Assembly: GCF_006345805.1 (NCBI RefSeq)
Contig: NC_042998.1
Location: 9,610,001-9,674,000 of the forward strand
Direction: 5' to 3'
Length of the DNA: 64,000 nt
Source of the DNA: Octopus sinensis
Taxonomy: Eukaryota
Part shown: positions 2,621 through 53,729 of the stretch, piece by piece
Position numbering within the stretch: the stretch's first letter is position 1
How the letters are laid out: every line of letters starts with the position of its first letter
Position numbers and translations under genes: made by a program
The notes under the pieces: generated by a model
The model's database searches: none
What the model saw: the letters and a program-made list of their open reading frames with translations, nothing else
Told to the model about the DNA's origin: nothing

Positions 2621-4102
2621 GTATGTATTGAGTGTTCTTTTATAGGTCTACCCCACTTGTTCCTGCTTACCCAGAGGTGCAGGATTCCACTGCTGTAGAG
2701 CACTGAAACAATATAAGACACTTGTATTGCTATTTGAGTTAGTAAAGGTTCAATAAGTTCTGTAGTCATTTCTTTTAATTCTGATGAACCTGTGGTTTTA
2801 GTTTCAGTCCCATTCTGCATCACCTTGGCCAACCAAAGCCTGGTGACTGGATAAGCAGAAACTGAAAGAAACCCATTGTATATCAGGTTGAGTAAAAAGT
2901 AAGCAATGTTTTGAACCATAAAGAATTTGTACTGGATTTTTGCAGAATTTTGGATATTTTTTAAACATTCTTTTGCAATTGTCTGATAATACAAACAAAG
3001 ACTTGCCCAAATGCATCAATAAACTAACGCTGATATCCTTTTCATCGTTGTTACAATCATCTGAAATGGAACTGTCAAAGTGCGATATTAACAAAACGTT
3101 TGGTGAGGAAATGACCAGTGAGTGGTCAGCTCAAAAATGGTTTAAATGAGACCTGAGCAGTGGAGACCCAATGCTGAAAGTACATTCAGAGAGTTCATCC
3201 ACTCTAGAATTCTGGATTTTTATGTCACCGGAATAAACAAACTTGTAATTCATTGGCAAAATAGTGTTGATTGTAATGGTATTTACTTTGATGAATAAAA
3301 TGTCTGCATTGTTGAAATTGTGATGAATTTCAGGTTTCAAACCATTGCTTACCTTTTACTCAGCTTGATATATATACACACAATTTTACAAACCCTGAAC
3401 TATATGTCTATTTGTCATTCGGGGTTTATGAAGTTGCTTATAAATATATTCGTCAATTAAATTCCAACATAGTTTGATTATCACATGTTTTTGTACTTTT
3501 ACTTTTGTAACAGTCTTCAGGTAAATGTTTATGTAGTAGATTAACAAACAACTAATGTACTTCACATTTGTTAACTGAAGTGAAATGATTGAATTTTTTC
3601 CTTTAAATACTTTCCGCTAGGCTCCACCTGGTTGAAGCTTATGAACACTATTTTGACCAATCAGTATGGGGTTTAGGCGTGATGGTTTGATGATTGCAGT
3701 AACACACATTGACAGCACTTATTAAAAGAAGCATTTTAACCAATCACAGTCACCAGTACAGGATTTCATTACAATCAGTTGTTGAGAAACATCTGATACT
3801 ACAAACTGTAGTCCCACCTTAATTATTTTTAAATGAAATTAAGTACAAATTCAGATTAATTATACTATCAATATTACTACAAGTTTAGAGTTGAATTAAT
3901 ATTAGTAACATGAAGAATAATACTAGAACATGCCTGGCCAGAGGAAATCTGCCTCAAAGAATTCTGTTTTGCCTATAAAAGCATGGAAAAGTGGATGTTA
4001 AGCATTTTAAAACTTATATAAACTAAGAAATGTCACTTACTGATTTATTTGATTGAAATTGTGTTTTCTTAATAATGATTTCGTTTCTATTTCTGTTTTC
4101 AG

Positions 4103-4241
4103 CTCAAATTGACGGCCAAGAAATTACAGCAGCTGCTGTACTTGCGCCTAGACCTACCAGAGTGATTCCTCGTCGTAGTCCTATACGTAGGCTACCTCCA
4201 CGATGGCGTCCATCTCCTCCGAGATTCAGAGATAGGCGCAG
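4103..4241 (+). CDS. RNPS1: RNPS1 penultimate coding exon
   Basis: ttttcag|CTCAAATT...CGCAG|gtttgt. Encodes AQIDGQEITAAAVLAPRPTR...WRPSPPRFRDRR, in phase with the previous exon. Confidence 0.95.
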
Positions 4242-5799
4242 GTTTGTATTTTTTTACATTTTATTCTATAGACCATACTTTTCTTTCTCCCCTTGGTATC
4301 TTCACTTAGGTTTCATTAGTCAGGTCGGGTTTAGCTGGCTCCATTGCAACTGACTGGTCATCATGCTTGAATATCACTGAAAATATGTCAACAGAACTTG
4401 TTTTTAAATGTCTATGCTTTCTCAGTATTGGCCTCTTATGCAGCCAGTTAGGCATGGTGGTGCTTAACATGTCTAGAGGAATACCTACCTGTTGAATTCC
4501 GTAGTGGTTAAATTATTATTGATGTGTTGTGTACAGTGTTAAAAGTGGTGGCTGATATACTGCAAATGCTTGAAATTCAATGCACTCGAAAAGTGCATAA
4601 GAAAGTGCAGGGAAGCCTTACTGTTATCACTGTCTTGAACACATTGGTGTCCTGTTGACTGCATCATCTAGCTAACCTCTTAACTTTCTGTTACTATACT
4701 TCCTACTTCCAGAAAAGACTTTGCTAAGGTTTTAACAAACAACTTCAAATCAAGCCGATTTCAACCAAGCTGGAAGATGGCCAACATCAGACAGCAGACA
4801 CAGCTATCCAGGTTCAGTCCTAACTTTCTGTACTCTAACAAAAGAGCAATTGATTAAAATTCTAATATAGTATTGAATTATTATAGAAATACTTACCAAC
4901 ATCTAACAGCACCGAAGCTAAATGCGACTCAACTAGGTTATAATTGCAATCCTTTGGTCGTTAGACTTGCATGTTCTCTCTAGGAATTATAAAGCCCCAA
5001 ATTTGTGTTCCATTTTTATTTCATACTTGAGTGATTAATAGTAGGAAAGGCATCCATCTGTAAAAACAATTGCTCCTACAAAAGGGCCATTTCACCCATG
5101 CAAGCATGGAAAAATGGATATAAAGTTGATAATAAAAAAAAAAAATTGTGTGAAAGACTTGAAGTGGGGAAACACATACCAGGGAAAGAAATAACTGGTG
5201 TTATTTAAGACGTTGCTCTTTGCACTGTTATTTTATTTCTGCTATTGTTAGCTTGAGGATTTAGTCATTGGGCAAATTATTTTGAGCCTTTTGTTTTAAT
5301 ATGAAATTTAAAATCAGAAACTTGTTTCAGTATCTTTTTTTTAGTTTGGCCAGAAATATATTGGCAAATTTACAATGCCTCTTTTATATGCTGGTTAGAT
5401 GTTCAAGTATAAAACGTAATACTTTAATAGACCAGATAATCAAATTAGTACCAATTCGGTGATACACATCAGTTTCTGAGAGTGATCAGTTTTACTTGTA
5501 CACTGATTAAAGTTAACTAAGTGGAGCTGCAACGATACCCAAGGCAGAGCCTTTTGTTGTAAATTGATTGTTTTGTCAATATTTGCACTAAAAAATTAAA
5601 AAGGAAACATGCAAAAGTGAATAAGAATAGAAACTGTAAATGTCTTTTACTTGTTCACTATTTTTATAATTATAAATGGCCACTTGCAAGAGGTAGATTT
5701 TGCTCTCCAGCAAATTGAGTGGATGTATATGGAAACTATCATCTTAGCATTGATAGGCATAGATATATCTGTTTGAATGTTCTCAATGTCTGATTTCAG

Positions 5800-12246: not shown

Positions 12247-12456
12247 CTAACTAGGCCGACATTGCAAATGTTGCTCACTTCGGCTATCTGTAGACGGTCC
12301 ACTCTCCTGATCTTCATCATCCATATCTAATACTCCAGTGATCCGGTATCCCATATTCATCAGCATCACTTCCAATGGGTCTGCATTCATTCTTCTTTGG
12401 TTGGCTAATGCTGCATCATCTGAGTTATCAATTTCTCGCTCATTCTTTGTCCCATC
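12247..12456 (-). CDS. WDTC1: WD and tetratricopeptide repeats protein 1, last coding exon
   Basis: ttccag|GAT GGG...; encodes ANQRRMNADPLEVMLMNMGYRITG...QCRPS*, matching the vertebrate WDTC1 C-terminus as I recall it. Confidence 0.95.
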   Translation of the reverse strand, partial: DGTKNEREIDNSDDAALANQRRMNADPLEVMLMNMGYRITGVLDMDDEDQESGPSTDSRSEQHLQCRPS

Positions 12457-12772
12457 CTGGAAAGGTGAAAAGGAGAAGAATTAACTACCTCTCTAAATAT
12501 TAGAAACATTTTGTTCATTCCCCATCCGTATGCTAGCAGGCAAATATTTATTATCGACAAATTGTGTGTGGAAATGTCAAAAACCATTACCAACCATAGC
12601 TCTGTGCAGAACAATGAAAATATCCACACAGACACACAGTTTCTAACTACCAAGTTTTCTCACAAGGCAATGGTCCAAAACTATGGTAAAGGACACTTGT
12701 CCAAGGTACCACAAAGTGTGATTGAATTAAAGCCATGCAGTTGCAAACATCTTAACTACATAGTCAAACCAG

Positions 12773-16400: not shown

Positions 16401-17683
16401 CCACATTCTAGGGAGGAAAACTAGAAGTAGTTGATAGCTTCCGTTACCTAGGTGACCAAATCAGTAGCGGAGGAGGGTGCGCTGAAAGTGTAGCTGCTAG
16501 AATAAGAATAGCCTGGGCAAAGTTCAGAGAGCTCTTACCTCTGCTGGTGACAAAGAGCCTCTCACTCGGAGTAAAAGGTAGACTGTATGACGCATGTGTA
16601 CGAACAGCCATGCTACATGGCAGTGAAACATGGGTCGTGACTGCTGAGGAGATACGTAAGCTCGCAAGGAATGAAGCCAGTATGATCGATGGATGTGTAA
16701 TGTCAATGTGCATATTCGACATAGTGTAAAGTACCTTGAGAGAAATGTTGTACTTAAGAAGCATCAGTTGTGGTGTGCAAGAGAGACGACTGTGCTGGTA
16801 TGGTCATGTGGCAAGAATGGATGAGGACAATTGTGTGAAAAAGTGCAGGTTCACAGGTTCCCTCAACCTAGCGGTTGAGGGAACCTGTGAAGGAGGTAGA
16901 CCCAGGAAGACCTGGGATGAAGTGGTGAAGCACGACCTTCGAACTTTAGGCCTCACCAAGGAAATGACTAGTGACCGGGACTTTTGGAAATATGCCGTGC
17001 GTGAGAAGACCCGGCAAGCCAAATGAGACTATAATCTCGTGGCCTATGCCAGGGGCGTAACCAGCCCACTTATGCGTACCTTTTCCTTCTTTGGACACTA
17101 AAACTCTGCTTGCGAAGACCTGTTGAGGCAAGTGAAATCAAAATCAAAATCAAAATCAAATTCGATGACTGGCGTCCGTGCTAGCAGGGTGCAAAGAGCA
17201 CCATACGAATGTGATCATTGACAGAGCGGCTAACTGACTTCCGTGCCAGTGGCACATAAAAAGGCACCATTCGAGTGTGATTGTTACCAGCGTCGCCTTA
17301 CTGGCACTCGAGCCCTGTGCTAGTAAGGTATTAAGAGCACCATCCGAGCGTGATCATTGCTGGAGCGGCTATCTGGCCTTCGTGCCGGTGGCACGTAAAA
17401 GACACCATTCAAGCGTGATCGTTACCAGCATCGCCTTACTGGCACCTGTACCGGTGGCATATGTAAAAGATTCGAGCGAGGACGTTGCCAGTACTGTCTG
17501 ACTGGCCGTGTACCAGTGGCATGTAAAAAGCACCCACTACACGCATTAGGAAGGGCATCCAGCTGTAGAAACTCTGCCAGATCAAGATTGAAGCCTGGTG
17601 CAGCCATCTGGTTCACCAGCCCTCAGTCAATCGTCCAACCCATGCTAGCATGGAAAGCGGACGTTAAACGATGATGATGATGA
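16401..17683 (+). mobile_element. 5'-truncated RTE-clade LINE (RT C-terminus, modular 3' UTR, (GAT)n tail)
   Basis: LEVVDSFRYLGDQI...LHGSETW...RRLCWYGHVARM...GRPRKTW are RTE ORF C-terminal motifs. Frameshifts near 16690-16735; stop at 17024-17026; then the UTR and tail. Confidence 0.92.
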
Positions 17684-24654: not shown

Positions 24655-25114
24655 ACGTGTGTGTATATGTGTGTATGTATAATTAATAATTAATAAATAA
24701 TTAATAATTTGTTAATTATTGATAATTTTTGGCAAATTTTCGAAGAAATATATATATATATATATATATATATCCACACACACACATACAGTGTGCTATA
24801 GAATGCTAAAATAAGTGTGGTATAAGAAGTCATCTATAAGAACAATCTTTTGTCAAGTGTGTATATAAATAAAAAGAAAGTCAGATAAATAAAAGCAGGC
24901 ACAAGGAGTGTATTCTCATGGGAAGCCACAAACACAAATACATGAATGATGTAACCAAGTCTTATTTTACAGCTGATTTAGATAAACAATCACTGGAGCC
25001 AAAACCATGTACAGTAACCTCTTGACAATCGTGTTACATTCCAAAACTGCCCCACAACAGGTAAAAATCTGTCAAGTAGAAACAGTACTGTACTGTATGT
25101 TTTTTTACTATTCT

Positions 25115-25516
25115 CTCTTTTACTCTTTTACTTGTTTCAGTCATTTGACTGCGGCCATGCTGGAGCACCGCTATTAGTCGAGCAAATCGACCCCGGGACT
25201 TATTCTTTGTAAGCCCAGTACTTATTCTATCGGTCTCTTTTGCCGAACCGCTAAGTGACGGGGACGTAAACACACCAGCATCGGTTGTCAAGCAATGCTA
25301 GGGGGACAAACACAGACACACAAGCACACACATACATATATATACATATATAGGACAGGCTTCTTTCAGTTTCCGTCTACCAAATCCACTCACAAGGCAT
25401 TGGTCGGCCCGGGGCTATAGCAGAAGACACTTGCCCAAGATGCCACGCAGTGGGACTGAACCCGGAACCATGTGGTTGGTTAGCAAGCTACTTACCACAC
25501 AGCCACTCCTGCACCT
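25115..25516 (-). mobile_element. SINE family 1
   Basis: Family match. Confidence 0.88.
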
Positions 25517-25586
25517 ATGTTTATAAAATGTATATATTTATTTTATTATAAATGCAAAACAACACCTCAGAGGAATCAATGTAAGC

Positions 25587-25816: not shown

Positions 25817-26030
25817 ATAATAAACTGCGATAGGTGAACCGTGATATGGCAAGGGATTACTGTATATAATACAAAGCCTTAATAATACTGAAAGGGTTAT
25901 GGATTAACATGACTTTGGAGGGATCTGTGATGTAAAATAATGTTATCCTTATCAGAAAATTCTGGCGGCCAGAGTACACGCGCACACACACACATACACA
26001 CACATTTTACAATCAAATGATATACTATTC

Positions 26031-26431
26031 TCTCTTTTACTCTTTTACTTGTTTCAGTCATTTGACTGCGGCCATGCTGGAGCACCGCTATTAGTCGAGC
26101 AAATCGACCCCGGGACTTATTCTTTGTAAGCCCAGTACTTATTCTATCAGTCTCTTTTGCCGAACTGCTAAGTGACGGGGACGTAAACACACCAGCATCG
26201 GTTGTCAAGCAATGATAGGGGGACAAACACAGACACACAAACACACATACATATATATATATATATACGACAGGCTTCTTTCAGTTTCCATCTACCAAAT
26301 CCACTCACAAGGCATTGGTTGGCCCGGGGCTATAGCAGAAGACACTTGCCCAAGATGCCACACAGTGGGACTGAACCCGGAACCATGTGGTTGGTTAGCA
26401 AGCTACTTACCACACAGCCACTCCTGCGCCT
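26031..26431 (-). mobile_element. SINE family 1
   Basis: Family match. Confidence 0.88.
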
Positions 26432-26493
26432 ATATGATGACATAACTAAATCATTGAATGACAGATTTTTAGAAAAAAAGGTAAAACTCATAC

Positions 26494-26729
26494 CATGATC
26501 AGTTTTTGAAAACATTGCAGCTTTGATGTCTCTGTCGAGAGTCTCACAGGCACTGTTTCTGGCGTAGTCTGGAAATTTGGACTTGAACTGCTGTAAGCAG
26601 TCATGAGCTTCTTGGGGCCATGACAATTCATAGAGGCAGCGAGCCAGACGGAAATGAGCTTTCAAATAATTGAGATCCAACTGGAGAGCGCTGTGACAGT
26701 CCCGTAAAGCAGCATACAAATCTCCATCC
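26494..26729 (-). CDS. WDTC1: WDTC1 exon (second TPR part)
   Basis: cgttag|G GAT GGA GAT...CAT G|gtatga. Encodes DGDLYAALRDCHSALQLDLNYLKAHFRLARCLYELSWPQEA. Confidence 0.96.
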
Positions 26730-29800: not shown

Positions 29801-29942
29801 ACCCCAGTACTTAATTTATCAACCCCGAAAGGATGAAAGGCAAAATCGACCTCGGCAGAATTTGAACTCAGAATGTAACGGCAGACAAAATACTGCTAAG
29901 CATTTCGCCCGGCATGCTAACATCTCTGCCAGCTTGCCACCT
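26843..29942 (-). mobile_element. Head-to-tail array of four SINE family 3 units, the last split by a CR1
   Basis: Units ~26843-26991, 26992-27176, 27177-27360 and 27361-27415 + 29785-29942. Only the last carries the tRNA head. Confidence 0.88.
27416..29784 (+). mobile_element. Young 5'-truncated CR1-clade LINE (EN C-terminus + RT, one frameshift)
   Basis: LSQHVEYPTR...LDLVF...SDHAVL (APE), then a 663-aa ORF with NYRPVSLTS, DFAKAFD, GVPQGSVLGPLLF, FADD. 3' stem-loop CCATGT-CCCCCT-ACATGG at 29721-29738; (TAAC)5 tail. Confidence 0.95.
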
Positions 29943-30284
29943 TTATCTCTTACTTGTTTCATTCACTGGACTGCCTCAGAAAGTTTAGTTAAACAAATCA
30001 ACCTCAGTACTTATATTTTTTTTTTAATCTGGTACTTATTCTACTGGTCTCTTTTGTTGAATCCTTAAATTATGGAGATGTAAACAGACCAAGTGGGGTT
30101 TGGAAAAAGGGAACTGAAAGTAGGCTGTTTTGTGTGTGTGTGAGTGTTTATATTTATGCTTCTCTGAAAATATCTGAACTACAAGTGATGCTGTTGTCAT
30201 TTGCCCCGTGAACAAATTGTCTAAGATCCTTTATTTGACAAGCAGGTAAGACTTAGCAACAGGAAGGGCATCCAACTCATCTAA

Positions 30285-31710
30285 CCTTATGTCACAGCTT
30301 CATCAAGGATTGAGGGCCTAAAGACAAGGCAATCAGCTCATATGTCTTCAGCCGGTGACCATCTCCTTCCTCTGCTTTCCATGTTTGTCTACCATACAAC
30401 ATCACATTACTTACATGTACTCTTACATGTACTTCATATGATCTGCTTTTGTGAAATATTGAAACAGGCTCTTCTTGAGTAGTCTTCTTTTTTTTGTTAG
30501 TTTTCTTATTAACCAGTATTTAAAGATTTTTTAGCCTTTTCTGTGTTTGTCTTTAGCCTTTTGACCCCAACACACTCGTCCACATTTTGAACTTTTTTCT
30601 GGGTTCTTGAAGGGATTCTACAACGAGGATCATTTCATAAATATCCAACAGTTTCCAGCTCCTTTAAAGCTTGTTTTAAGTATATTTAATTCCTACATAT
30701 TCTTTTACTCTTTTACTTGTTTCAGCTTGAGAGCTGTGGCCATACTGGGGCACCACCATTGGTGCTGTTACATCTTCCTTTCCTCTTTTAATTGTTGGCA
30801 TTTGGTGAATGAGGGAGTTTGATGTTGATGCCCTCATCTGTGTTTCCTGCCATGAAGTTGGTTCATCTAGGGCTCTTGACAGTAAGAGATCCACTTCTGG
30901 TTTGAAGAGCTATGGGCCCTTGAATCCTAAACTATTGCAGTATTTGGTCCTTTGATAGCAAGTCTGATATCTTTAGCACTATACACTGATACCCTGATGT
31001 TAGTATAAATTTTATTGCCAAAGTTTGGGACAATCTTAAATGAAACAGCAATACTGGAAACTGTTGGATATTTATGAAATGATCCTCGTTGTAGAATCCC
31101 TTCAAGAACCCAGAAAAAAGTTCAAAATGTGGACGAGTGTGTTGGGGTCAAAAGGCTAAAGACAAACACAGAAAAGGCTAAAAAATCTTTAAATACTGGT
31201 TAATAAGAAAACTAACAAAAAAAAGAAGACTACTCAAGAAGAGCCTGTTTCAATATTTCACAAAAGCAGATCATATGAAGTACATGTAAGAGTACGTGTA
31301 AGAGTACATGTAAGAGTATTCCACTGTTTCTAAACTGTACATTCCTGGACGGTTATTAAGGTGTTGTTGTTTAAATGTTTTGCAGGTCTTTATATGATGT
31401 AGACTAATTGTTTCAATTAACAGTGTTTTGTTATGCTTTCTTTTCATCTTCCTTGTTTTCGATTCCAACAGAAGCAACTCTATCAACTAATGGCTTCAGT
31501 GTACCACATCGAGCAGGTACAAATGGAGTTACAACACCAATGGTGCCAAAATCTAGTAGATCAACATCTCCTTCTTCCTCAACAACTTCATTACAAGCAG
31601 AAGATGATCCTGAAAAGTTTAAATGTAGGATTGGGAAAAGGTAGATACGATGTATTCTCCTTCTGTTCTTTTTGGTTTTTTTTCCATTTCATAAAATGTG
31701 TTGAAATATA
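30285..31710 (+). repeat. Inverted duplicate of 33840-35057 with an internal template-switch segment
   Basis: 30285-31054 = revcomp of 34269-35057; 31054-31316 = direct copy of 34684-34932; 31316-31710 = revcomp of 33840-34246. About 10 substitutions plus small indels. Confidence 0.95.
31472..31640 (+). pseudogene. Antisense-oriented identical copy of WDTC1 exon 33922-34090 with intact splice sites
   Basis: ccaacag|AAGCAACTC...GGGAAAAG|gtagat; 169/169 identical by eye. Confidence 0.93.
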
Positions 31711-32327
31711 AAAAAGCAGACATAAAAATAAAGCACAAAACAAAGTGTGAATTTTGTGTATTTTTGATAACTATGTATAATTCATATTGTTGTAGCATTC
31801 ATTCTAAATATCCCAAAACTGAAAATTTCATCACAAATCTCATCAATATTCCATTTTTTTTTTTATCACTTACTCAAGATGGAACACAATGCCTATTGCC
31901 CATTTCAGAGCCTCTAAGACTCGTGAGAGGGGGGGAGGTATCCTTAACTGGAGGCCTGGCCCAATTGTTCACCTTTAGATGCTCTTCTATAAAAAACATC
32001 TAAAGGTAAGGTGGTGGGTGTTAAACCATCAACAGATTAAATTTATCATATAAGTAGGCTACAACAGGATTTGAGCTAAGAATGCAAAAGAGCTGGAACA
32101 AATATTGCAAGGGATACTGACCAACAATAAAGATTGTGCTATCTTATCCTCTTAGACTGGTACTCTAATCTTATTTGTACTTCATTTAGAATGGTGCAAG
32201 TAAAATTGGTTTAATACTTATCCACTCTTTAATTCAAGAAAAATTTGGTAGACATGAACTAGAATATTTTTGTCCTTCTGTACATGCAACTTCAAACAAA
32301 AAAAGTGTAAGTATAAAGAGAATTTAC

Positions 32328-32510
32328 CATTTTCGCTTCATATATGCTGCAGCTCTGTTGCCGTAGAGAACTGAAGCATGAGGCATCATTGAAATCGCTT
32401 GGTTATATAAAATAATGGCTTTCCTACATTGGTCTTTTTCAAAATAATTGTTGGCTTTCTTCTTAAGAGCTTCCACTGGAGGTGACAAACGTTTGGTATC
32501 TCGTTTATAC
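32328..32510 (-). CDS. WDTC1: WDTC1 exon (first TPR)
   Basis: ttttag|G TAT AAA...AAA TG|gtaaat. Encodes VEALKKKANNYFEKDQCRKAIILYNQAISMMPHASVLYGNRAAAYMKRKW. Not in the ORF track. Confidence 0.95.
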
Positions 32511-32611
32511 CTAAAAAAGTGAAAATACTGTTGATTTCAGATTAAACAAAAGGAAAAAAAAAACATATGTAACAGTATTCAGAAAGGTGATAATTTGACA
32601 AACACAATGAT

Positions 32612-32860
32612 GATTCCGGGTTCAATCCCACTGCGTGGCATCTTGGGCAAGTGTCTTCTGCTATAGTCCCGGGCCGACCAATGCCTTGTGAGTGGATTTG
32701 GTAGACAGAAACTGAAAGAAGCCTGTCGTATATATGTATATATATATATGTATGTGTGTGTTTGTGTGTCTGTTCTCTTAGCATTGCTTGACAACCGATG
32801 CTGGTGTGTTTATGTCCCCGTCACTTAGCGGTTCAGCAAAAAGAGACCGATAAAAGAGTA
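32612..32860 (+). mobile_element. Truncated SINE family 1
   Basis: B-box region and body without head or tail. Confidence 0.75.
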
Positions 32861-32994
32861 AACCTTTTTCTTGTTTGTATGTTTATAGCCCCTATAGTCC
32901 CAAGCCTAACAAAGCCCTGTCAATTGATGTGGTTGGCAGAAACTAATAGAAATTCATTGTGTATGTGTGTATAAACATTTATATAATATATATA

Positions 32995-33155
32995 TACCCA
33001 CTACACTCAGGGAGTTAGGAAGGGCATCCAGCTGTAGAAACACTGCAAGATTAGACTGGGACCTGGTGCAGCCTCCTGGCTTCTCAGACCCCAGTCGAAC
33101 CGTCCAACCCATGCTAGCATGGAAAACGGACATTAAACAATGATAATGATGATGT
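32995..33155 (+). mobile_element. RTE 3'-end copy
   Basis: TTAGGAAGGGCATCCAGCTGTAG...TGATAATGATGAT. Confidence 0.75.
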
Positions 33156-33306
33156 AATGCTGCAACACACGTCGTTAATGAGTAGGATAAAGTTCCACTT
33201 CTCCTTCTACCGCTTTATCTTTTCCTTCTTCCTCCATGTCACCACTTACCATCTTGTATATGTATGTTCGTTTGTTTGTGTGTGCGTGTGTGTAAGTATA
33301 TGAAGT

Positions 33307-33681
33307 GGAGGCGCAATGGCCCAGTGATTAGGGCAGCGGACTCGCGGTCGTAGGATCGTGGTTTCGATTCCCAGACCAGGCGTTGTGAGTGTTTATTGAG
33401 CGAAAACACCAAAAATGCTCCACGAGGCTCCGGCAGGGGATGGTGGTGATCCCTGCTGTACTCTTTCACCACAACTTTCCCTCTCACTCTTACTTCCTGT
33501 TTCTGTTGTACCTGTATTTCAATGGGCCGGCCTTGTCACGCTGAATATCCCCGAGAACTATGTTAAGGGTACACGTGTCTGTGGAGTGCTCAGCCACTTA
33601 CACGTTAATTTCACGAGCAGGCTGTTCCGTTGATTCGGATCAACCGGAACCCTCATCGTTGTAACCGACAGAGTGCTTCCA
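33307..33681 (+). mobile_element. tRNA-Arg-like-headed SINE (family 4; possibly an octopus OR-type SINE)
   Basis: GGCGCAATGGCCCAGTGATTAGGGCAGCGGACTCGCGGTC...GGTTTCGATTCCC: A/B boxes and a TCG anticodon-like loop. Family name is unverified. Confidence 0.65.
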
Positions 33682-33921
33682 GTAAGTATATGAAAGCACA
33701 TGTGTATGGTTATACACTTGCATGTTTGTTGTCTATGTATTTATATTTATGTCTGTCTGTTTACCTGTGTGTGTGCACACACATGTGCATCTGCATGCAC
33801 ATGTGTGTACATTCATATACAATATAGATACAATGTATCTATATTTCAACACATTTTATGAAATGGAAAAAAACCCAAAAAAACCACCAAAAAGAACAGA
33901 AGGAGAATACATCATATCTAC

Positions 33922-34090
33922 CTTTTCCCAATCCTACATTTAAACTTTTCAGGATCATCTTCTGCTTGTAATGAAGTTGTTGAGGAAGAAGGAGATGTTG
34001 ATCTACTAGATTTTGGCACCATTGGTGTTGTAACTCCATTTGTACCTGCTCGATGTGGTACACTGAAGCCATTAGTTGATAGAGTTGCTT
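33922..34090 (-). CDS. WDTC1: WDTC1 exon (Ser/Thr-rich linker)
   Basis: ccaacag|AA GCA ACT...AAA AG|gtagat. Encodes ATLSTNGFSVPHRAGTNGV...KFKCRIGK. Phases 1 and 2 link the flanking exons in frame. Confidence 0.9.
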
Positions 34091-35414
34091 CTGTTGGAAT
34101 CGCAAACAAGGAAGATGAAAAGAAAGCATAACAAAACACTGTTAATTGAAACAATTAGTCTACATCATATAAAGACCTGCAAAACATTTAAACAACAACA
34201 CCTTAATAACCGTCCAGGAATGTACATTTTAGAAACAGTGGAATACAATTTCAAGATTTTGAAATTATGTATTGCCGTTTCATTTAAGATTGTCCCAAAC
34301 TTTGGCAATAAAATTTATACTAACATCAGTGATTTATACTAATATCAGAGTATCAGTGTATAGTGCTAAAGATATCACACTTGCTATCAAAGGACCAAGC
34401 ACTGCAATAGTTTAGGATTCAAGGGCCCATAGCTCTTCAAACCAGAAGTGGATCTCTTACTGTCAAGAGCCCTAGATGAACCAACTTCATGGCAGGAAAC
34501 ACAGATGAGGGCATCAACATCAAACTCCCTCATTCACCAAATGCCAACAATTAAAAGAGGAAAGGAAGATGTAACAGCACCAATGGTGGTGCCCCAGTAT
34601 GGCCACAGCTCTCAAGCTGAAACAAGTAAAAGAGTAAAAGAATATGTAGGAATTAAATATACTTAAAACAAGCTTTAAAGGAGCTGGAAACTGTTGGATA
34701 TTTATGAAATGATCCTCGTTGTAGAATCCCTTCAAGAACCCAGAAAAAAGTTCAAAATGTGGACGAGTGTGTTGGGGTCAAAAGGCTAAAGACAAACACA
34801 GAAAAGGCTAAAAAATCTTTAAATACTGGTTAATAAGAAAACTAACAAAAAAAAGAAGACTACTCAAGAAGAGCCTGTTTCAATATTTCACAAAAGCAGA
34901 TCATATGAAGTACATGTAAGAGTACATGTAAGTAATGTGATGTTGTATGGTAGACAAACATGGAAAGCAGAGAAAGGAGATGGTCACCGACTGAAGACAT
35001 ATGAGCTGATTGCCTTGTCTTTAGGCCCTCAATCCTTGATGAAGCTGTGACATAAGGCATATGATGGGTATTTTTATAATCTAAAGAGACAGACAAACAG
35101 AAAGAAAAAATGAGACAGAAGGAGAAGAATAGATCCCAGTAGAGGACTGGTACTCTATTGTTTCCAGAAAAATGAAGTGCGAAGTTCAACTTGGTAGTAT
35201 TGGAACTCAGAGCAGAGGGAGAGAGCCAGAGAAAAGACTGCAAGGCAATCTATCCTATGCTCTAATACCTCAACCAATTGCCTATGAGCTGGTTGTAGTG
35301 TGTTGAATGTACAATACTAATTTACATCAAAGGTCTGAGCTGAAGTGAGTTGAGAAAGTGGTCAAGCACTGAAGGAATATGCTAATGAGTAACAATAACA
35401 CAAAAAAACCAGCT

Positions 35415-36075: not shown

Positions 36076-36279
36076 CTTTTACTATGCCATTTGCATTACC
36101 TAGTACCAAAGACGTGTCAAACTTTTGTGGTTTTCTTTTTTTATTTACATCAAACAAATAAATTTGTTCACCCCCTAGGTTAACCAACAGCTCAGACCCA
36201 TCTGGACTATATGTGACATAGGTGGAGGCAAGGGTGCGATACCGCTTACGGTAGTCCATCTGTTTCTGAGGTAAGTGGC
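36076..36279 (-). CDS. WDTC1: WDTC1 exon
   Basis: tttcag|GC CAC TTA...AAA G|gtaag. Encodes HLPQKQMDYRKRYRTLASTYVTYSPDGSELLVNLGGEQIYLFD. Confidence 0.96.
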
Positions 36280-36999
36280 CTGAAATAAAATTGATTGGAC
36301 ATTAGACATACTTACACACACACACAAACAAAAACAGATATATGCAAGCCCTGTGTGTGTATGTGTGCACATATACACATACATATGTACAAATACATAC
36401 ATTCATTCACAAGTGTGTGCATGAGGATTCATATATATATACGTACACACACATACATATGTAAACACACACACATACATAAATACATAATATATAATCA
36501 CAAACTGACATATGCAAATACATATGTGCACAGGTAGAAAACAGGTGTTTTATATCTAACCTAACAAGCTTAATATGAAGCAGATTTAGGGAGAGTCAAC
36601 TGGAGAAATGTGCAGCCTACTCAAAATTAAAGCTGTTTCACGAAAATAAACTTCTCTTGCAGCACAAAGCTGAAACCAATTAGCTCCGCAAGCATTATTA
36701 ATGTAATTATAATGTGATAAAGAGTTAACTCGTTTACACTGACCCCAATACCTGGTTGATACTTAGGTACTAGGGTTGATGCAGTCTTTAATGAAATAAC
36801 GAATAAACGAACCTTAAGTTCTGAACTTATCAAATTCTGACCATCATTCCATCTCTCTCTTCTTGGTTATTCATCCCTCCCACCACCGCCAACCAACGCA
36901 TCACCTATCAAGGTAGTGTCACTATTTTCAAAAGTCTAATAACATGGCTTTGAATTATAAGCAATATTTCCATGAATTTAGAACAGCCTAGTAACAAAT

Positions 37000-37410
37000 A
37001 GGTGCAGGAGTGGCTGTGTGGTAAGTATCTTGCTTACCAACCACATGGTTCCTGGTTCAGTCCCACTGCGTGGCATCTTGGGCAAGTGTCTTCTGCTATA
37101 GCCCCGGGCCGACCAATGCCTTGTGAGTGGATTTGGTAGACGGAAACTGAAAGAAGCCTGTCGTATATATGTATATATATATATGTGTGTGTGTGTATGT
37201 GTGTCTGTGTTTGTTCCCCTAGCATTGCTTGACAACCGATGCTGGTGTGTTTACGTCCCCGTCACTTAGCGGTTTGGCAAAAAGAGACCGATAGAATAAG
37301 TACTGGGCTTACAAAAAGAATAAGTCCCAGGGTCGAGTTGCTCGACTAAAGGTGGTGCTCCAGCATGGCCGCAGTCAAATGACTGAAACAAGTAAAAGAG
37401 TAAAAGAGAG
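37000..37410 (+). mobile_element. SINE family 1 with 15-bp TSD
   Basis: AGCCTAGTAACAAAT at 36985-36999 and 37411-37425. Confidence 0.92.
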
Positions 37411-39293: not shown

Positions 39294-40290
39294 AACTACA
39301 TTTCTTTCTCTCTAACCAACGAATAACGGTTTTCAACTACATTACACTGATGTTGCATTCCCTTTCCTATCAAATTAGTAATGCCTGCATGCTTCACCTC
39401 AACTTTTAACCTCAACAGTGTACTACCTGCTTCATCAATAACTTGACAGCCACTTTAGTTCTGTTTAGAGTCAAGATTCTTTTATTCGTGCAAGATTATC
39501 ACATGTGAGATTTAAATCATTGACGAAAATTCATTTCAATATGAATAAATAATAATAAAAAAAATAAGGGCTATAATATTTATAACAGCTTTAATTTATC
39601 AGAGAGGGGGGAAGTCGGTAAGCAATGATGGAAGCAGACTGAGTGAAAATGTAACTGCGGAGGCAGAATAAATGGTTTACCATTATAGCCAAGATGAATT
39701 TACATAATTTAGCTAATGTTCGGGCAAACACACATTAAAACTGAATTATATTCCAATAATACAACATTTTCTAATATAACCAATGTAAAATATGCAGCAA
39801 TATTTTACAAAGTAAGACAAACATTTAATTGGTTTAAAGATAAATTGCGATTGTAATTGGAAAAATCACAGCTATTAATGAGCTGTAATTCATTTCAAAA
39901 TCATTGTTGCTTTTTGGTTTTGTAAAATCAAGGATAAGAAATTACTGGCTTAAAATCTCCTACTGTATATTTTAGAATTTTTCCAAACATGAATATTTGC
40001 TGATATAATTAAAATAGAATTATTCTTCAATGCCATGTGATGTAAATGCTGTTGTGTTATTTTAATTCAAAGGAGATATTTTATAAATTGGATACATGCA
40101 AACCTAATTATAAAACACAGAGCATTGATTGCCATTTCAATTCCAAAAGTGAAAGGTTAAAAAGACTTTGGATGTGCTTCTTTAAACCAATTAAGAAATC
40201 TAAAGAGAGCAGATACATAATGAGAATTGTGTGCAATGAGTTGAAGTAACACCATTAGACAGTTGCAGGCATTAATTGCAGTTGTATTAC

Positions 40291-40379
40291 CTGCTATGTA
40301 GAACTTAACACAGCCTTGAGGCATAGGGAACTCCGCACTGTACGCAGACCGCATCAGAGACAGAGTGTCCTCAAATGAC
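40291..40379 (-). CDS. WDTC1: WDTC1 exon
   Basis: ttctag|G TCA TTT...GCA G|gtaata. Encodes PMPQGCVKFYIAG (vertebrate equivalent recalled as PLPDGAAQYYVAG). Confidence 0.9.
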
Positions 40380-41801
40380 CTAGAAGAACAATTAAAACAA
40401 ACAGATTTATACCTGCAACAAAGTATTGTACACAGCCCGAATGTAAGTTGTAGTCCTCTTCCCTTAAGCTGGGTGGAGTCACAGGGCTATCCCATTGTAA
40501 CCTAGTAAGAGAGAGGATCAAAATAGGGTTATGAAACTAAAGCAAGGAATAGAAAAATATCAGAGTTGATTCTTGCTTTATAATATTTAGAAAATGAATA
40601 GAGATGTTAAATTTAAACTGGATTCAAATTAGAAACCTTTGTTTCTATTTACACATCCTAGAGTGAGGCATCTGGTGATGATCACAGACCAAACCAATTG
40701 AAACAGTGTAGATGTAGATATATATATAAAAAATAGCATCCCTAAAGCTGAATTTAAAGATCTGAAAAAATTATCATTATTATTATTCTTGACGGTGTGT
40801 ATAAATACTGATCAAGAAGGTAAAAAAATAAAAACATCTTCCAAAATTTATGAAAAAAGCCTTAAAAGAATTTTGTCTTTGAAATTTCAGAAAAAGAGAA
40901 TCTGAGAGTTGAATAGTTTTAAACAGAATTTATGTAGAACACCATATAATCCAAATTTGAAGGTTACTGCTCAATGTTTTACAAAATATTTAATGCAAAT
41001 TGGCGGATGTACTTTTGAATACAAATTATATTTGACATCAAAAAAAAAAAAGCAAGAAAAAATACTGAGTAAAAATAGATAAAAAAAAAAGAGTTATAAT
41101 CACACAAATCTATACTATCTAATTTACAAATATTCATTAGTAAGAAAGAGGTTAAAACATAACAAAAGTCACCATGGCCTCAAAGCTTGAAAACCTTTTA
41201 AAACTAAAACATAAAGTTTATTTGTTTTATTAAAATATGAGCAAAGAATGTGTTAATCTATAATAAATTTATTGTGATGTTAAATGGCCCAGTGAGTAAG
41301 GTACGAAACTATCAGCTCCTATGTTATAAGATCAAATCCATCACAGGTTTTAGAATTCTTTATTTCTGGTGGGCAGGATATTTTTATTCAAAGAATCTTA
41401 GTTCACTTAGATAAGACTGTGTGCTAAACCCCAGAGAGAAAGTTACCCAGATAAACTAATGTTACAATCCCAAAAAAACACATTTATCATTGGATTAGTG
41501 TTAGGGAAACAGAGACAGGCACGGCTCTAATGGACACTTCTGATTTGTAAAGTAGGCCAGCTTTTGTTTTTTTAAAAGAATACAAAATGGAAAAACCGAC
41601 TATGCAGAGAATATGCAAGTTAATACCCGCACAGACCAATGCAAATAACAGACCCGAGATTTATCATAAAGCTTAACAGTTTAATATTTATAGTTACTGA
41701 ATCTAGTTGTAAATAAAGACAGAGTAAAATCCAGTTGATTATAAATATGTTACAATATAAGAAAAAATACGAATTTGACACACTGAGGTCACTCAACTTA
41801 C

Positions 41802-44835: not shown

Positions 44836-45639
44836 TCAATCAAAACGTCTATAAAGACTGAACCAATCATATATTATTGAATCTTGCTCATCAATAATAC
44901 ATAATAGATGGTTAACAGCTAGTAAAGGAGTGTGGCAAAGTATTGCCTTACAATTGTTAGTTAGTGGATCCAATTCACAGATGGGGTAACATGTGTTCTC
45001 GAGTAAAAATGAGAACCAGTAGAAGCTGGAGTTAAGTGTGTGAGGGACTGATCTCCTGTTCAATGATAAGTCTTATACTTTTAGTTCTCTTTTATCTTTT
45101 ACTTGTTTCAATCATTGGACTGCAGCCATGTGGGTCAACACTTTGAAGGGATTTTAGTCAAACAAATCACCCCTAATAATTTGGGTTTTTTTTTTAATAA
45201 TGCTAATACTTGTTCTATCAGTCTCTTAGGTCAAACCACTAAGTTACGAGGATGTAAACAAACCAATACTGGTTGTCAACTCAAGTGGTGGGTGTTTGAT
45301 AAACAGACCCAAATACATAAACATGTAATCATTCACACACACACATGCACAATGGACCTCCACACAGTTTGCATTTACTCAAATCTACTCCCAAGGTATT
45401 GATCAACCCAGATCTATAGTAGAAGACTATAAGGTGCCATGCAGTGGGACTAAACTGAAAACCACATAGTTGCAAAGTGGGTTTCCTAACCATACAGCCA
45501 TACCACTGCCTATACTGTTGTTTGAAAATATCTTGGAACACTGTAATGCGATTGTTAGTTCAAGACACAGACTTTTTTTTTATGAAATATCCATTGGAGT
45601 TATAGATTTGGAGAGATACTTCTAAAATATGTCTGCGTT

Positions 45640-46180
45640 CAGATCGTCTGGAAGCCGTTCAGCGACGTGCAACCAAAAGAATACCCTCCATCAGGCATTT
45701 GCCATATTCTGAACGCCTTACTTCCCTGGGCATGGACACATTGAAACTCCGACGTCTGGCAGCTGACTTGGCAGACACCCATAAAATTATCAACCATCTT
45801 ACTAACAATAACTCTGAGCACCTTTTCAAACTCCACCTGTCTAACACCTGTGGACATCTTTACAAAGTCAGAAAACAGCACAGCTCCCATGACTTTAGGA
45901 AACATTTTTTCACGCTGAGAGTTGCTGAAGCATGGTACAAACTGCCGGCATCAGTTGTTAGTTGTCGGAGCACTGCATCCTTCAAAACTTCCATGCTTTC
46001 TGAGATTCGCCAACACTACACTTGATTTTCTCCCCTCCATATACACACAAGCATGTATCTGACTCATACATTGTTCGCTTTCCAGACATTTGTACATTAC
46101 CGCATACACTTTATACGCACTTTTGACAAGTTGTGGTGCACCTGAGCATTGTATACAGTAATTTCATTATTATTATTTAT
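45640..46180 (+). mobile_element. CR1/L2-type LINE 3' fragment
   Basis: LEAVQRRATKRI...YSERLTSLGMDTLKLRR...FFTLRVAEAWYKLP; (ATT)n tail. Confidence 0.85.
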
Positions 46181-46839
46181 ATTACAGATATGTATTTGCA
46201 CAGCAAGTGACCTGATCTGAGATCATGTGCTGTAACGAAAACAATTGCAGGGTGGAAGGTGTTTATAAGCCATTTAAGAAACACAGAGAATTTTGTCAGT
46301 GAACAGGTCGCGGTCTCAAAGCGACGAAAATATTTTGACAAATTAAATTTAAATGTTGGAGTGAATCTAACGGTTTTTGTGTGTTTTTTAAATGGCTTAC
46401 AAACACCTTCCACGCTGCAATTGGCTTCATTTATAGAAGCTGGAAAAACATACTATTGTCAGTGTTCAATGATGCCCGTTACTTACTAGATATTATCTTA
46501 TTATTTTATTTACTTGTTTCAATAACCAGACTGCAGTCATGTTGGAGCATGCCTTATATACTTATATCACTTCCCCAACTCCCATTACTTTGTCTGTTAC
46601 TTATTTTATTAACCTAGTAAAGGAAGAAAGGCAAAGCTGACCTGGGTGCAAAGGAGCAAAACAGAATACTGCTCGGTAATTTTGTTTGACAAACTGATCC
46701 TTTCCATCTCATACACACAGACGCATGTATAGAAATACAACCCTTAGGTCTGAGCCAAAGGGCCAATGAGCTTCCAAAGAGTGACTGACAATCAAATTTT
46801 AATGAAAAGGTTTCAGTCAACCTGAGGCTAAGACAGAGA

Positions 46840-47144
46840 GCTCAAAATCTCTCGTGGAAGCGCCATCCAACCAAAATGCAAATATATGGGAAACTACCAA
46901 CTGTGTCATCTCTTGTGAAAGGTAGGAGAGTCCAGTTTGCTGGACATTGTTGTAGAGCTGAGAAAGAAGTAATTTCTACTCTTCTCCTCTGGAAGCCATC
47001 TACTCGCAATACCAGAGGGCGCACACTCTCCAGGGATACAGGCATCCAGCAACAGGACCTCCGTAATGCCATGATGGACCGTGAAGTCTGGCATAGCATG
47101 GTAAATTCCATTGTCTCGACCACGGTCGAACAATGATGATGATG
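46840..47144 (+). mobile_element. RTE-X-like LINE 3' fragment with 10-bp TSD
   Basis: NLSWKRHPT...YGKLPTVS...RRVQFAGHC; (TGA)n tail; AAGACAGAGA at 46830-46839 and 47145-47154. Confidence 0.85.
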
Positions 47145-52240: not shown

Positions 52241-52806
52241 AGCCAATTTTCCTAAGCAATCCTGTAGTTGACTATGACAATAGCATAAATCTAAATTATG
52301 AAATGAAAATAAAAACCTTACAATATCTCGTGCCATGTAAAGGCACCCAGCACACTCTGTAAAGTGGTTGGCATTAGGAAGGTCATCCAGCTGTAGGAAC
52401 CATGCCAAATCAGACTGGAGCCTGGTGCAGCTTCTCCAGCTTGCCAGCTCTGGTCAAACCATCCAACCCTTGCTAGTGTGGTCAACTAGCAAGGGTTGTC
52501 CACACCAGCAATGATAATGATGATACCGATATAGTATGTGAACTTCACATATACATTAATTTTCTAAGATATTATAGGTTGATACTTTTGTAAATTTGGA
52601 TATTTAAGTGAATCTTAAGTTCAGAATTGGGTACCCTTCTTAACACAAAATACCAAACCAGTAAAGAGAAACATTATGTATTTCGTGATTTTTCTATTAA
52701 GTTTACAGGGAGATTTAAACCATTATGCCTTATATAAGATCACAATATAATGCTATCATCCAAGTTTTGTAGGTTTTTATCTTTCCTCTACTTTTAAGCC
52801 GTGATA

Positions 52807-53197
52807 TCTTTATATATAAAAGTGAAGTTGTGTGTCCGTCTCCTACAATTTAGATTCCTAACTACTCCCACATTTTGCGGTGCAGTGTAAACAAAAGCGG
52901 GTATCTTACAGTCGTGATTCATATTGAGCCCTTCTGGGTATTAGCGCGTGTCTATGATGAGTCTACGATTTAAAAAAAATTTACCATCATTTTTTCCCAT
53001 TTTTAATGCATTTTTGGCATATATAAGGGAAATAACTCTCTAAAAATGTATTATTAAATCTCAGAACGTAAAAAGCTACAGTAACACCCCGCTTTGAGGT
53101 TAGCCATATTGAGATGGCTATTATACTTTACATCTCTAAAAATGCTTATATAGTTATTTCCCTTACAAACCCGAGCAATGCCGGGCGATACTGTTAG
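52807..53197 (+). mobile_element. Non-autonomous Helitron
   Basis: A|TCTTTATATATAAAAG start; subterminal hairpin CCCG-AGCAATGC-CGGG; degenerate ..TTAG|T end. A ~55-nt core is shared with ~1824-1887. Confidence 0.7.
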
Positions 53198-53682
53198 TCA
53201 ATATATATAAGAGAACCTTTACTTAGAAAATTTTATAGTATATACTTTAATTACATTTTTTTTAGAAAATTTCTAATTTAAGTTTTAACATTAAAATGGA
53301 GTCACAATAGATAAGTAAATAAAATGTCAGTTTTTTTTCATGTAAAATGTCATGTGCTGTACTATGATTTGGACAAGGAATAGAACATTTATAGTTACAA
53401 TTAGATGATACAAAGAAAAAATAGAAAAATGCGAAAAAGGTAAAGATAGACCACAATAATAATTTGATATCCATTTTGGTGGTTTGTAGTTCCAGGATCA
53501 AATTCTTGCAAATGAGAATATTTAAATTGAAAAAAAGGAAAAAAATAAGACGAAAATGAAACAAAATATTCGCTTTCATTTAATGATGTAATATGCAATG
53601 CCAGTTGGTCAAAAATATCACCAGCGAGACAAAGAACAGAAAATGCAAAGACAGAACAGAAATTAAAGTTTAGATTACTCAC

Positions 53683-53729
53683 GTTCCTTTATCATTCCAT
53701 TCTAAACAATTCACACAGCCTTGGTGACC
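53683..53729 (-). CDS. WDTC1: WDTC1 exon (47 nt)
   Basis: tcacag|GGT CAC CAA GGC TGT GTG AAT TGT TTA GAA TGG AAT GAT AAA GGA AC|gtgagt = GHQGCVNCLEWNDKG. Confidence 0.96.

Follow-up and report, generated by a model that had tools for sequence, protein, structure and literature searches.

A probable young inverted duplication within WDTC1 of Octopus sinensis carries an antisense copy of a coding exon

One intron of WDTC1 in Octopus sinensis contains an almost identical inverted copy of another part of the same gene, including a complete coding exon in antisense. We consider it probable that this intragenic duplication, found in a window of 64,000 nucleotides (the whole stretch of DNA analysed here), is real, evolutionarily young and specific to the O. 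sinensis lineage, that it originated by template switching, and that it could give rise to an RNA stem for which no evolved regulatory role is indicated. The default reading is of a neutral or mildly deleterious structural variant that has survived through a considerable fraction of the period since the O. sinensis and O. vulgaris lineages separated. Persistence of this kind, if the age of the insertion matches its divergence, argues against a strong deleterious effect, and hence the stem may have little effect on the mature mRNA.

Anatomy of the two arms

WDTC1 lies on the minus strand, where tblastn with a 719-aa Octopus protein (P0001) placed 13 exons between 59.9k and 12.25k; given this structure, both arms of the repeat fall within one pre-mRNA. 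Arm A (30285–31710) is an inverted copy of arm B (33840–35057) with 99% identity, as recovered by repeat search and blastn in the 64-kb window, and the length of this identity marks the repeat as non-chance. The match breaks down into 726 nt with 7 mismatches (30285–31010 against 35057–34332), 61 nt with 1 mismatch (30994–31054 against 34329–34269) and a third pair with 3 mismatches and one 12-nt indel (31316–31710 against 34246–33840). No other near-identical local duplication, inverted or otherwise, was found in the window or in the 88-kb locus. The features are listed below in the direction of WDTC1 transcription.

36077–36301, minus strand: exon n-1, upstream (tblastn HSP limits)
33840–35057, minus strand: arm B, the source segment, sense in the WDTC1 pre-mRNA (collinear with the orthologous segments of O. 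vulgaris and O. bimaculoides)
33922–34090, minus strand: coding exon n, 169 nt (translation; tblastn of P0001 aa 331–390)
31711–33839, minus strand: spacer of 2129 nt, the loop of the predicted hairpin
32328–32510, minus strand: exon n+1, 183 nt, in-frame, first TPR motif, within the loop (tblastn of P0001 aa 390–451 at 32512–32327; splice sites from sequence)
31710–31711, strand not applicable: right insertion breakpoint J4, TA microhomology (against the O. vulgaris and O. bimaculoides empty sites)
31316–31710, plus strand: arm A part 2, inverted copy of B 33840–34246, antisense partner of the exon, acceptor and donor
31472–31640, plus strand: copy of exon n without mismatch, antisense within the WDTC1 transcript (exact string match; tblastn hit 31462–31641)
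31279–31318, strand not applicable: 12-bp unit AGTACATGTAAG, 3.3 copies, at the third breakpoint
31054–31302, minus strand: flipped 249-nt piece within arm A, direct copy of B 34684–34932
30285–31054, plus strand: arm A part 1, inverted copy of B 34269–35057 (upstream-intron portion)
30284–30285, strand not applicable: left insertion breakpoint J1, CC microhomology (against the same two empty sites)
26495–26728, minus strand: exon n+2, downstream (tblastn HSP limits)

In arm B the 169-nt exon is flanked by 82 nt of downstream and 967 nt of upstream intron, and the orthologous segments of the arm lie at about 63568–64751 in the O. vulgaris locus (L001) and about 52538–53715 in that of O. bimaculoides (L003). 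The position of exon n+2 places arm A inside intron n+1. The spacer between the arms runs through most of intron n and the whole of exon n+1 and ends 617 nt into intron n+1; SINE-like insertions were seen in it at 32610–32855 and 33305–33681. Exon n encodes E/ATLSTNGFSVPHRAGTNGVTTPMVPKSSRSTSPSSSTTSLQAEDDPEKFKCRIGK/R, the linker joining the WD40 and TPR parts of the protein, and 37% of its bases are A. Its copy shows 0 mismatches in 169 nt, an outcome expected ~23% of the time at 0.87% divergence and therefore not significant in itself; selection or gene conversion preserving a perfect exon copy is not supported.

Internally, arm A is more complex than a single reversed segment. Part 1 differs from arm B by 8 substitutions in 787 nt, and lacks a 19-bp tandem duplication present in arm B at 34330–34348. 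The flipped piece, with a single difference (at 31296), reads in the same direction as arm B, so that it is the reverse complement of 30410–30658 and can form a hairpin with it inside arm A; the 249-nt segment thus occurs three times (34684–34932, 30410–30658 and 31054–31302). At the third breakpoint AGTACATGTAAG has one unit more than the template, a slippage-type signature.

A previous sequence-only reading of this stretch had described a ~99% inverted copy with a 2.1-kb spacer, an exon copied without mismatch together with both splice sites, ~80 nt of donor-side and ~950 nt of acceptor-side intron, and both arms in the same WDTC1 pre-mRNA. Repeat search and blastn, exact string matching and the tblastn exon map agree with it throughout, the intron portions measuring 82 and 967 nt. 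The flipped piece and the 19-bp tandem duplication had been left undeveloped or unmentioned, and the presence of exon n+1 in the loop had been missed.

Origin and age of the insertion

The window, 100% identical to the O. sinensis assembly (GCA_006345805.1; locus L002), was compared with its orthologous loci in O. vulgaris and O. bimaculoides. Neither species carries arm A at the corresponding position, where both flanks are collinear (empty sites at about 66678–66688 in L001 and about 55011–55021 in L003), bearing out the suggestion of the sequence-only reading that the event was de novo. Twelve bp of empty site have become 1426 bp in O. sinensis. The two arms diverge by 0.87% plus two indels, compared with 1.7–2.3% to O. 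vulgaris. When substitutions were polarised, four were O. sinensis-specific and common to both arms, three were found only in A, three only in B, and three were homoplasic. Each arm retains some ancestral states that its partner has lost: at 30942, 30943 and 30993 the ancestral base survives in arm A, which also agrees with O. vulgaris at 31047.

The insertion has no target-site duplication; instead, the 12 bp of empty site, CATGCTAGCATT, are missing between J1 and J4. Microhomology of 1–3 bp occurs at all four junctions (in order CC, C, GTA and TA), and all templates lie within 5 kb, a pattern that, as far as junction sequence can tell, fits microhomology-mediated template switching. Replication or repair with serial switches of this kind, whether MMBIR/FoSTeS-like or by polymerase-theta-type templated insertion, would have copied 1.2 kb of WDTC1 backwards (exon n, 82 nt of downstream intron and about 970 nt of upstream intron). 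The copy would have landed 2.1 kb away in intron n+1, removing 12 bp there, and a 249-bp stretch would have gained a third copy, in the opposite orientation.

It is unlikely, though conceivable, that arm A is instead an assembly artefact, absent from the animal itself: either the second haplotype of arm B, giving a heterotype false duplication, or a path of chimeric reads wrongly built into the contig. The insertion is known from one PacBio CLR and Hi-C assembly of O. sinensis (PacBio and Hi-C are named in the title of Li et al. 2020, as cited in PMC9699675), and unphased assemblies often contain false duplications (PMC9516828). The divergence between the arms resembles allelic variation, being compatible with either alleles or an aged duplicate, so arm A could derive from the other haplotype, biologically or by mis-assembly; ancestral states are split between the arms, as they would be with two alleles, and PacBio reads are noisy. 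Hallmarks of false duplication include gaps between copies (PMC9516828), whereas the 64-kb window contains 0 N and no gap beside or between the copies. Nor does the 88-kb locus hold any further such duplication. Haplotype under-collapse yields collinear or adjacent copies; it would not yield an inverted insertion 2.1 kb away replacing exactly 12 bp, nor four microhomologous junctions together with a reversed segment inside the copy and its slippage unit. Moreover, the polarised differences, and the missing 19-bp tandem duplication, indicate that A is something other than the assembled B copied with many errors. The argument, already made from sequence, that differences between the arms count against a simple read duplication is joined by gapless sequence, four clean microhomologous junctions and ancestral states particular to each arm, and the concern is weakened.

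A missed-adapter palindromic read was rejected as a source, since 2.1 kb of unique orthologous sequence with a real exon separates the arms. A 498-aa concatenate of arm-boundary ORFs gave no scored match (0/3974 word-sharing candidates), the protein collection evidently being without intronic octopus ORFs, and the right flank had 0 matches in a JGI metagenome scan, where octopus DNA is not expected.

Transposition of arm A, or its origin as a retro-copy, is effectively refuted by junction anatomy: the WDTC1 introns are rich in SINE-like repeats, but the arms are unique sequence matching only the orthologous position in other species, the copy has intron on both sides of the exon, and a 12-bp deletion stands in place of any target-site duplication, poly(A) or terminal repeats. 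Nor is there support for copying of arm A through an edited RNA, since it has only two A-specific T-to-C changes and no cluster of them.

Predicted effects on the WDTC1 transcript

Because both arms lie in one minus-strand transcript, an almost perfect intramolecular duplex of ~1.16 kb is possible. Minimum free energy folding of a 4873-nt piece of the pre-mRNA (-2763 kcal/mol) predicted a stem of 1163 bp in long-range pairs (719+56+359+29 bp), with an energy of -316.9 kcal/mol for the exon n duplex. The antisense partner lies ~2.3–2.6 kb downstream of exon n in the same transcript and covers both splice sites; the predicted duplex would bury the exon together with these sites and loop out exon n+1. 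Rfam returned no family at gathering score across the whole window, and no known structured RNA in either arm.

The predicted stem makes several consequences plausible, namely hyper-editing by ADAR, skipping of exons, NMD, circRNA formation and siRNA effects. The likeliest result would be promiscuous hyper-editing of both arms in those nascent transcripts where the stem forms. As a side effect exon n might be skipped, or exon n+1 might be skipped or back-spliced. ADAR is very active in coleoids, and long perfect duplexes lead to non-selective hyper-editing, often with nuclear retention, rather than tuned recoding. For a 1.2-kb perfect duplex, promiscuous hyper-editing is accordingly the expected outcome, not the site-selective recoding of a classical editing complementary sequence (ECS). 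It is doubtful that the insertion has become common or fixed and also changes WDTC1 RNA processing measurably in O. sinensis relative to O. vulgaris, be it by dense de novo A-to-I editing of the constitutive exon n that carries through to mature mRNA, by frame-shifting skipping of exon n, by in-frame skipping of exon n+1, by circRNA formation or by some combination of these.

A stronger proposal, that arm A is a de novo ECS which recodes or hyper-edits exon n, edits or masks its acceptor, and tunes WDTC1 through frame-shifting skipping and NMD, appears improbable. Complementarity to the exon within the same primary transcript, as an ECS entails, is present (31472–31640, antisense, in intron n+1); the partner is perfect and covers both splice sites, and the exon is A-rich. 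Skipping of exon n would shift the reading frame owing to its 169-nt length, as had been pointed out from the sequence. Against this, the pairing element is not conserved, being absent from O. vulgaris and O. bimaculoides, and exon n is retained in every annotated isoform; no annotated isoform skipping it was found in any octopod. The WDTC1 protein is identical across O. sinensis, O. vulgaris and O. bimaculoides, which, taken with the absence of the element from two congeners, gives no indication of a selected function. In a literature search on WDTC1 editing in cephalopods, none of the papers listed combined WDTC1 with editing terms. A 177-aa query around exon n recovered distant homologues only, through an index so insensitive that the identical Octopus protein was missed too.

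Action of the stem chiefly on exon n+1, by in-frame skipping of its 183 nt and/or by back-splicing to a circular RNA, would be compatible with editing and seems quite improbable as the principal effect. Exon n+1 does lie within the 2129-nt loop that the predicted stem would close, which adds loop-out skipping and back-splicing as outcomes no less plausible than the proposed effects on exon n, and reverse complementary matches in flanking introns are known to promote both (PMC8330042). The geometry is unusual, however, with exon n itself inside the stem. Such pairing is, furthermore, antagonised by ADAR and helicases.

It is very improbable that the intronic hairpin is diced to endogenous siRNAs directed against exon n of WDTC1 mRNA, by analogy with Drosophila hpRNA loci and with plant MIR genes that trace back to an inverted copy of their target. 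The arms do form a long, near-perfect inverted repeat derived from what would be its own target gene, a known birth route of hpRNAs (e.g. PMC10317233, PMC10292708). Hyper-editing by ADAR would, however, compete with dicing. We know of no established endo-siRNA pathway for nuclear intronic hairpins in cephalopods.

Significance and relation to known systems

Recoding is massive in coleoids while the underlying RNA structures are poorly mapped, and the way in which editing sites and the sequences that pair with them come into being is not yet understood. The duplication is a good natural experiment in this respect: the WDTC1 locus offers a comparison with and without a ~1.2-kb antisense partner, present in one species, against an identical protein in its sister species. 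It could show how the octopus ADAR, spliceosome and possibly Dicer treat a newborn exon-containing hairpin, and whether such hairpins are tolerated. Were RNA processing indeed rewired, the origin of a dsRNA element aimed at an exon could be dated in an animal that edits heavily, the sister species serving as natural control; were the insertion an artefact, it would instead usefully illustrate an uncommon kind of false duplication, inverted and within a contig. There is also a practical consequence: the O. sinensis reference often serves for mapping RNA-seq from O. vulgaris (e.g. PMC9699675), and reads from exon n and its intron will multi-map there to both arms.

The insertion most resembles, in its anatomy, the products of FoSTeS/MMBIR known from human DUP-TRP/INV-DUP rearrangements: it is inverted and templated from a few kb away, with several switches, 1–3 bp of junction microhomology, a small deletion at the acceptor site, and one sub-segment present three times with copies in opposing orientation. 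The WDTC1 case differs in being very small (1.4 kb), intragenic and from a cephalopod, with a mechanism read from junction anatomy only.

At the RNA level, inverted repeat pairs in introns and UTRs, Alu pairs among them, which are hyper-edited and can cause nuclear retention, likewise provide long, near-perfect intramolecular dsRNA from copies a few kb apart, an anticipated substrate of promiscuous editing; the WDTC1 repeat, however, is not a transposon, and one of its arms includes a constitutive exon with both splice sites. With the ECS of the GluA2 Q/R site it shares a downstream intronic element complementary to a coding exon of the same pre-mRNA, but classical ECSs are short, imperfect, conserved and site-selective, whereas the WDTC1 copy is 1.2 kb long, near-perfect, separated from its target by another exon and absent in sister species. 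As with the reverse complementary matches implicated in circRNA formation and skipping, complementary sequences on either side of exon n+1 close a loop, although here the upstream arm includes a whole exon. Finally, hpRNA loci and young plant MIR genes have a comparable birth, in which part of a gene is duplicated in inverted orientation and the resulting hairpin is complementary to the mRNA of that gene; the WDTC1 hairpin differs from them in sitting in an intron of its own parent gene.

WDTC1 and its inverted duplication

Six-frame inspection of the minus strand of the window revealed WD40 and TPR exons, and the joined exon peptides, used as a query, returned a 719-aa WDTC1-like protein (P0001) whose sequence is identical across O. 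vulgaris, O. bimaculoides and O. sinensis. Three genomic loci of this protein were compared (L001, L002 and L003 respectively for O. vulgaris, O. sinensis and O. bimaculoides); the window is 100% identical to O. sinensis GCA_006345805.1, chromosome CM016860.1 (L002). By tblastn, WDTC1 has 13 coding exons on the minus strand, from 59.9k to 12.25k.

WDTC1 exons nearest the duplication (tblastn)
33922-34090, minus strand: exon n, 169 nt
32328-32510, minus strand: exon n+1, 183 nt, first TPR motif, inside the 2.1-kb spacer
26495-26728, minus strand: exon n+2

Despite the identical protein, the gene span varies widely, at ~93 kb (O. vulgaris), 82 kb (O. sinensis) and 59 kb (O. bimaculoides). Adjacent 30-codon alternative exons at 40411-40500 and 40289-40378 (minus strand; LQWDSPVTPPSLREEDYNLHSGCVQYFVAG and SFEDTLSLMRSAYSAEFPMPQGCVKFYIAG) match isoforms X1 and X2, apparently as a mutually exclusive pair born of tandem duplication; Argonauta hians has the second form and a Sepia-like transcript the first. 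Oriented toward the WDTC1 3′ end (last coding exon 12250-12459, minus strand) lies a plus-strand gene with an RRM-domain exon (2350-2628; Pfam RRM_1, E 2e-15) followed by an Arg/Pro/Ser-rich ORF (4057-4350), which we take to resemble RNPS1.

The sequence-only reading had described 30285-31710 (arm A) as an inverted ~99% copy of 33840-35057 (arm B), and the repeat-finder pairs listed below, BLAST and base-by-base comparison all confirmed these coordinates.

Repeat pairs linking arms A and B (repeat finder)
30285-31010 and 34332-35057: inverted, 726 nt, 99%
30994-31054 and 34269-34329: inverted, 61 nt
31309-31683 and 33879-34253: inverted, 375 nt, 98%
31054-31302 and 34684-34932: direct, 249 nt

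The arms differ by 11–12 substitutions, predominantly transitions, by a 19-bp tandem duplication (34330-34348) that B has and A lacks, and by a 12-nt indel within a T-rich run. Sequence specific to A includes C at 30352, 30369 and 31335 and a 12-nt deletion near 31689. Exon n recurs exactly at 31472-31640 (plus strand), as had been claimed. The exon positions place arm A in intron n+1, so that both arms share one primary transcript; the earlier proposal of a common WDTC1 pre-mRNA therefore stands, although it had overlooked exon n+1 within the spacer. No N occurs in the 64-kb window, of which the arms are the sole inverted near-identical local duplication. The sole other high-identity local duplication is a 413-bp direct repeat (25106-25518 and 26023-26433, 97% identity) directly downstream of exon n+2.

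Insertion, proposed copying path and age

In O. vulgaris and O. bimaculoides the flanks of arm A directly adjoin each other, the empty site reading CATCTAACC, CATGCTAGCATT and AAAAAAGCAG in succession; in O. sinensis the 1426-bp arm A stands in place of the middle 12 bp, CATGCTAGCATT. The insertion site lacks a target-site duplication, a poly(A) tract and terminal repeats. Judged from these alignments, arm A is a derived insertion, specific to the O. sinensis lineage among the three species compared, and its suggested de novo origin is borne out by the empty orthologous sites.

Microhomology with both templates was found at four junctions (CC, C, GTA and TA), from which we infer serial microhomology-mediated template switching (FoSTeS/MMBIR-like) or templated-insertion end joining. 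Copying would have read B backwards from 35057 to 34269, jumped to 34684 and read forward to 34932, gaining one additional 12-bp AGTACATGTAAG unit, then jumped to ~34253 and read backwards to 33840, after which the intron would have been rejoined.

Divergence in a four-way alignment of A, B and the O. vulgaris and O. bimaculoides orthologues, the last used to polarise
A to B: 0.87% (10/1153)
A to O. vulgaris: 1.74%
B to O. vulgaris: 2.33%
A, B or O. vulgaris to O. bimaculoides: ~4.7–5.3%

Among polarised sites, four substitutions were exclusive to A and B jointly, three were A-only, three B-only and three homoplasic. At 30942, 30943 and 30993 A carries the ancestral base and assembled B the derived one, and at 31047 A shares the O. 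vulgaris base while B differs. These ancestral states, together with the absence from A of the 19-bp duplication, indicate that A is not just assembled B with noise added, upholding the earlier argument against a simple read duplication. Against this divergence the exact exon copy is statistically unremarkable. Two readings remain: the duplication may have arisen at ~40% of the age of the O. sinensis/O. vulgaris split, both copies drifting since, or A may have been templated from a different allele.

The latter would also be compatible with a ‘heterotype’ false duplication, recognised by gaps separating the copies, by copies lying collinear and side by side, and by read depth reduced to half (PMC9516828). 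The testable hallmarks were not seen, there being no gap and an inverted insertion rather than adjacent collinear copies; moreover, exactly 12 bp give way to arm A, and its four junctions are clean and microhomologous. For this structural variant, seen in one assembly, we consider an assembly artefact unlikely. A missed-adapter palindrome would leave no spacer, and the arms are separated by one.

ORFs around the arm junctions had no match in the protein collection, and a short mRNA query recovered no octopus fragments; such absence is weak evidence in this word-indexed search, since that short query, a 177-aa exact substring of P0001, did not recover P0001 itself among the 100 candidates collected. 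A metagenome scan gave 0 matches.

In O. vulgaris a 7.3-kb tandem array of a SINE-like element (L001 67086-74430; 184-bp unit, 40 copies, 97% matches) lies some 400 bp away from the empty site; it is orthologous to window ~29807-29893, where O. sinensis has one partial copy. The same intron has thus been independently rearranged in both sister species. Dispersed SINE-like repeats of 85–93% identity fill the introns (for example 32610-32855, 37045-37296 and 33305-33681); the first and last lie in the spacer and have no counterpart at the orthologous position in O. bimaculoides, indicating that intron n gained insertions in the sinensis/vulgaris lineage. Long plus-strand ORFs at 16412-17023, 45606-46022 and 46789-47133 (e.g. 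...SFRYLGDQISSGGG...) have the appearance of decayed retroelement coding sequence, and had no Pfam match at E<=0.01.

Predicted pairing and its possible consequences

The 4873-nt minus-strand segment is predicted to fold at -2763 kcal/mol, with a long-range stem of 719+56+359+29 = 1163 bp (35069-33845 paired with 30275-31705) closing a loop that contains exon n+1. Predicted energies are -316.9 kcal/mol for exon n with its copy and, for a 374-nt block including both splice sites, -651 kcal/mol paired versus -74 kcal/mol self-folded; as modelled, the duplex potential of the arms is very large. Since the antisense exon copy would be transcribed only ~2.3–2.6 kb after the exon, pairing ahead of splicing is kinetically plausible. 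A local pairing of the flipped 249-nt piece with 30410-30658 (an inverted pair in the repeat finder) is also possible; it would compete with part of the long stem without involving the exon.

Going by established ADAR biology, non-selective hyper-editing is to be expected of a long, near-perfect intramolecular duplex in a coleoid nucleus, and it is plausible that putative edits would be carried into mature mRNA. If the splice sites of exon n were masked, frame-shifting skipping of this 169-nt exon and NMD could plausibly follow. Exon n+1 (183 nt), being looped out, might plausibly be skipped in frame or back-spliced, reverse complementary matches favouring both outcomes (PMC8330042), and the hairpin might plausibly be diced into siRNAs, after the manner of hpRNA loci, which are born from inverted duplications (PMC10317233, PMC10292708).

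Several observations count against evolved function: arm A is not conserved, the three species share an identical WDTC1 protein, exon-n skipping is not found among annotated isoforms, and the perfect exon copy is statistically unremarkable. Should its divergence be a fair guide to its age, arm A has been tolerated, which speaks against any large drop in WDTC1 output.

Relation to known systems

The structural variant is present in the assembly and absent in the sister species, and its arms are co-transcribed. Known from one assembly and with its RNA side predicted, arm A offers a datable natural experiment in the birth of a dsRNA that targets an exon, in an animal with heavy RNA editing. By structure it belongs, as a small example, to the template-switch inverted duplications, showing all three of the features tested. 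Like an editing complementary sequence (ECS) it is complementary within the same transcript, but it is absent in O. vulgaris and O. bimaculoides; with conservation lacking, and with the defining dependence of editing on the element a hypothesis, it is not classed as an ECS. Functionally, the arm A/B stem has a greater likeness to inverted-repeat hyper-editing substrates than to a classical ECS.
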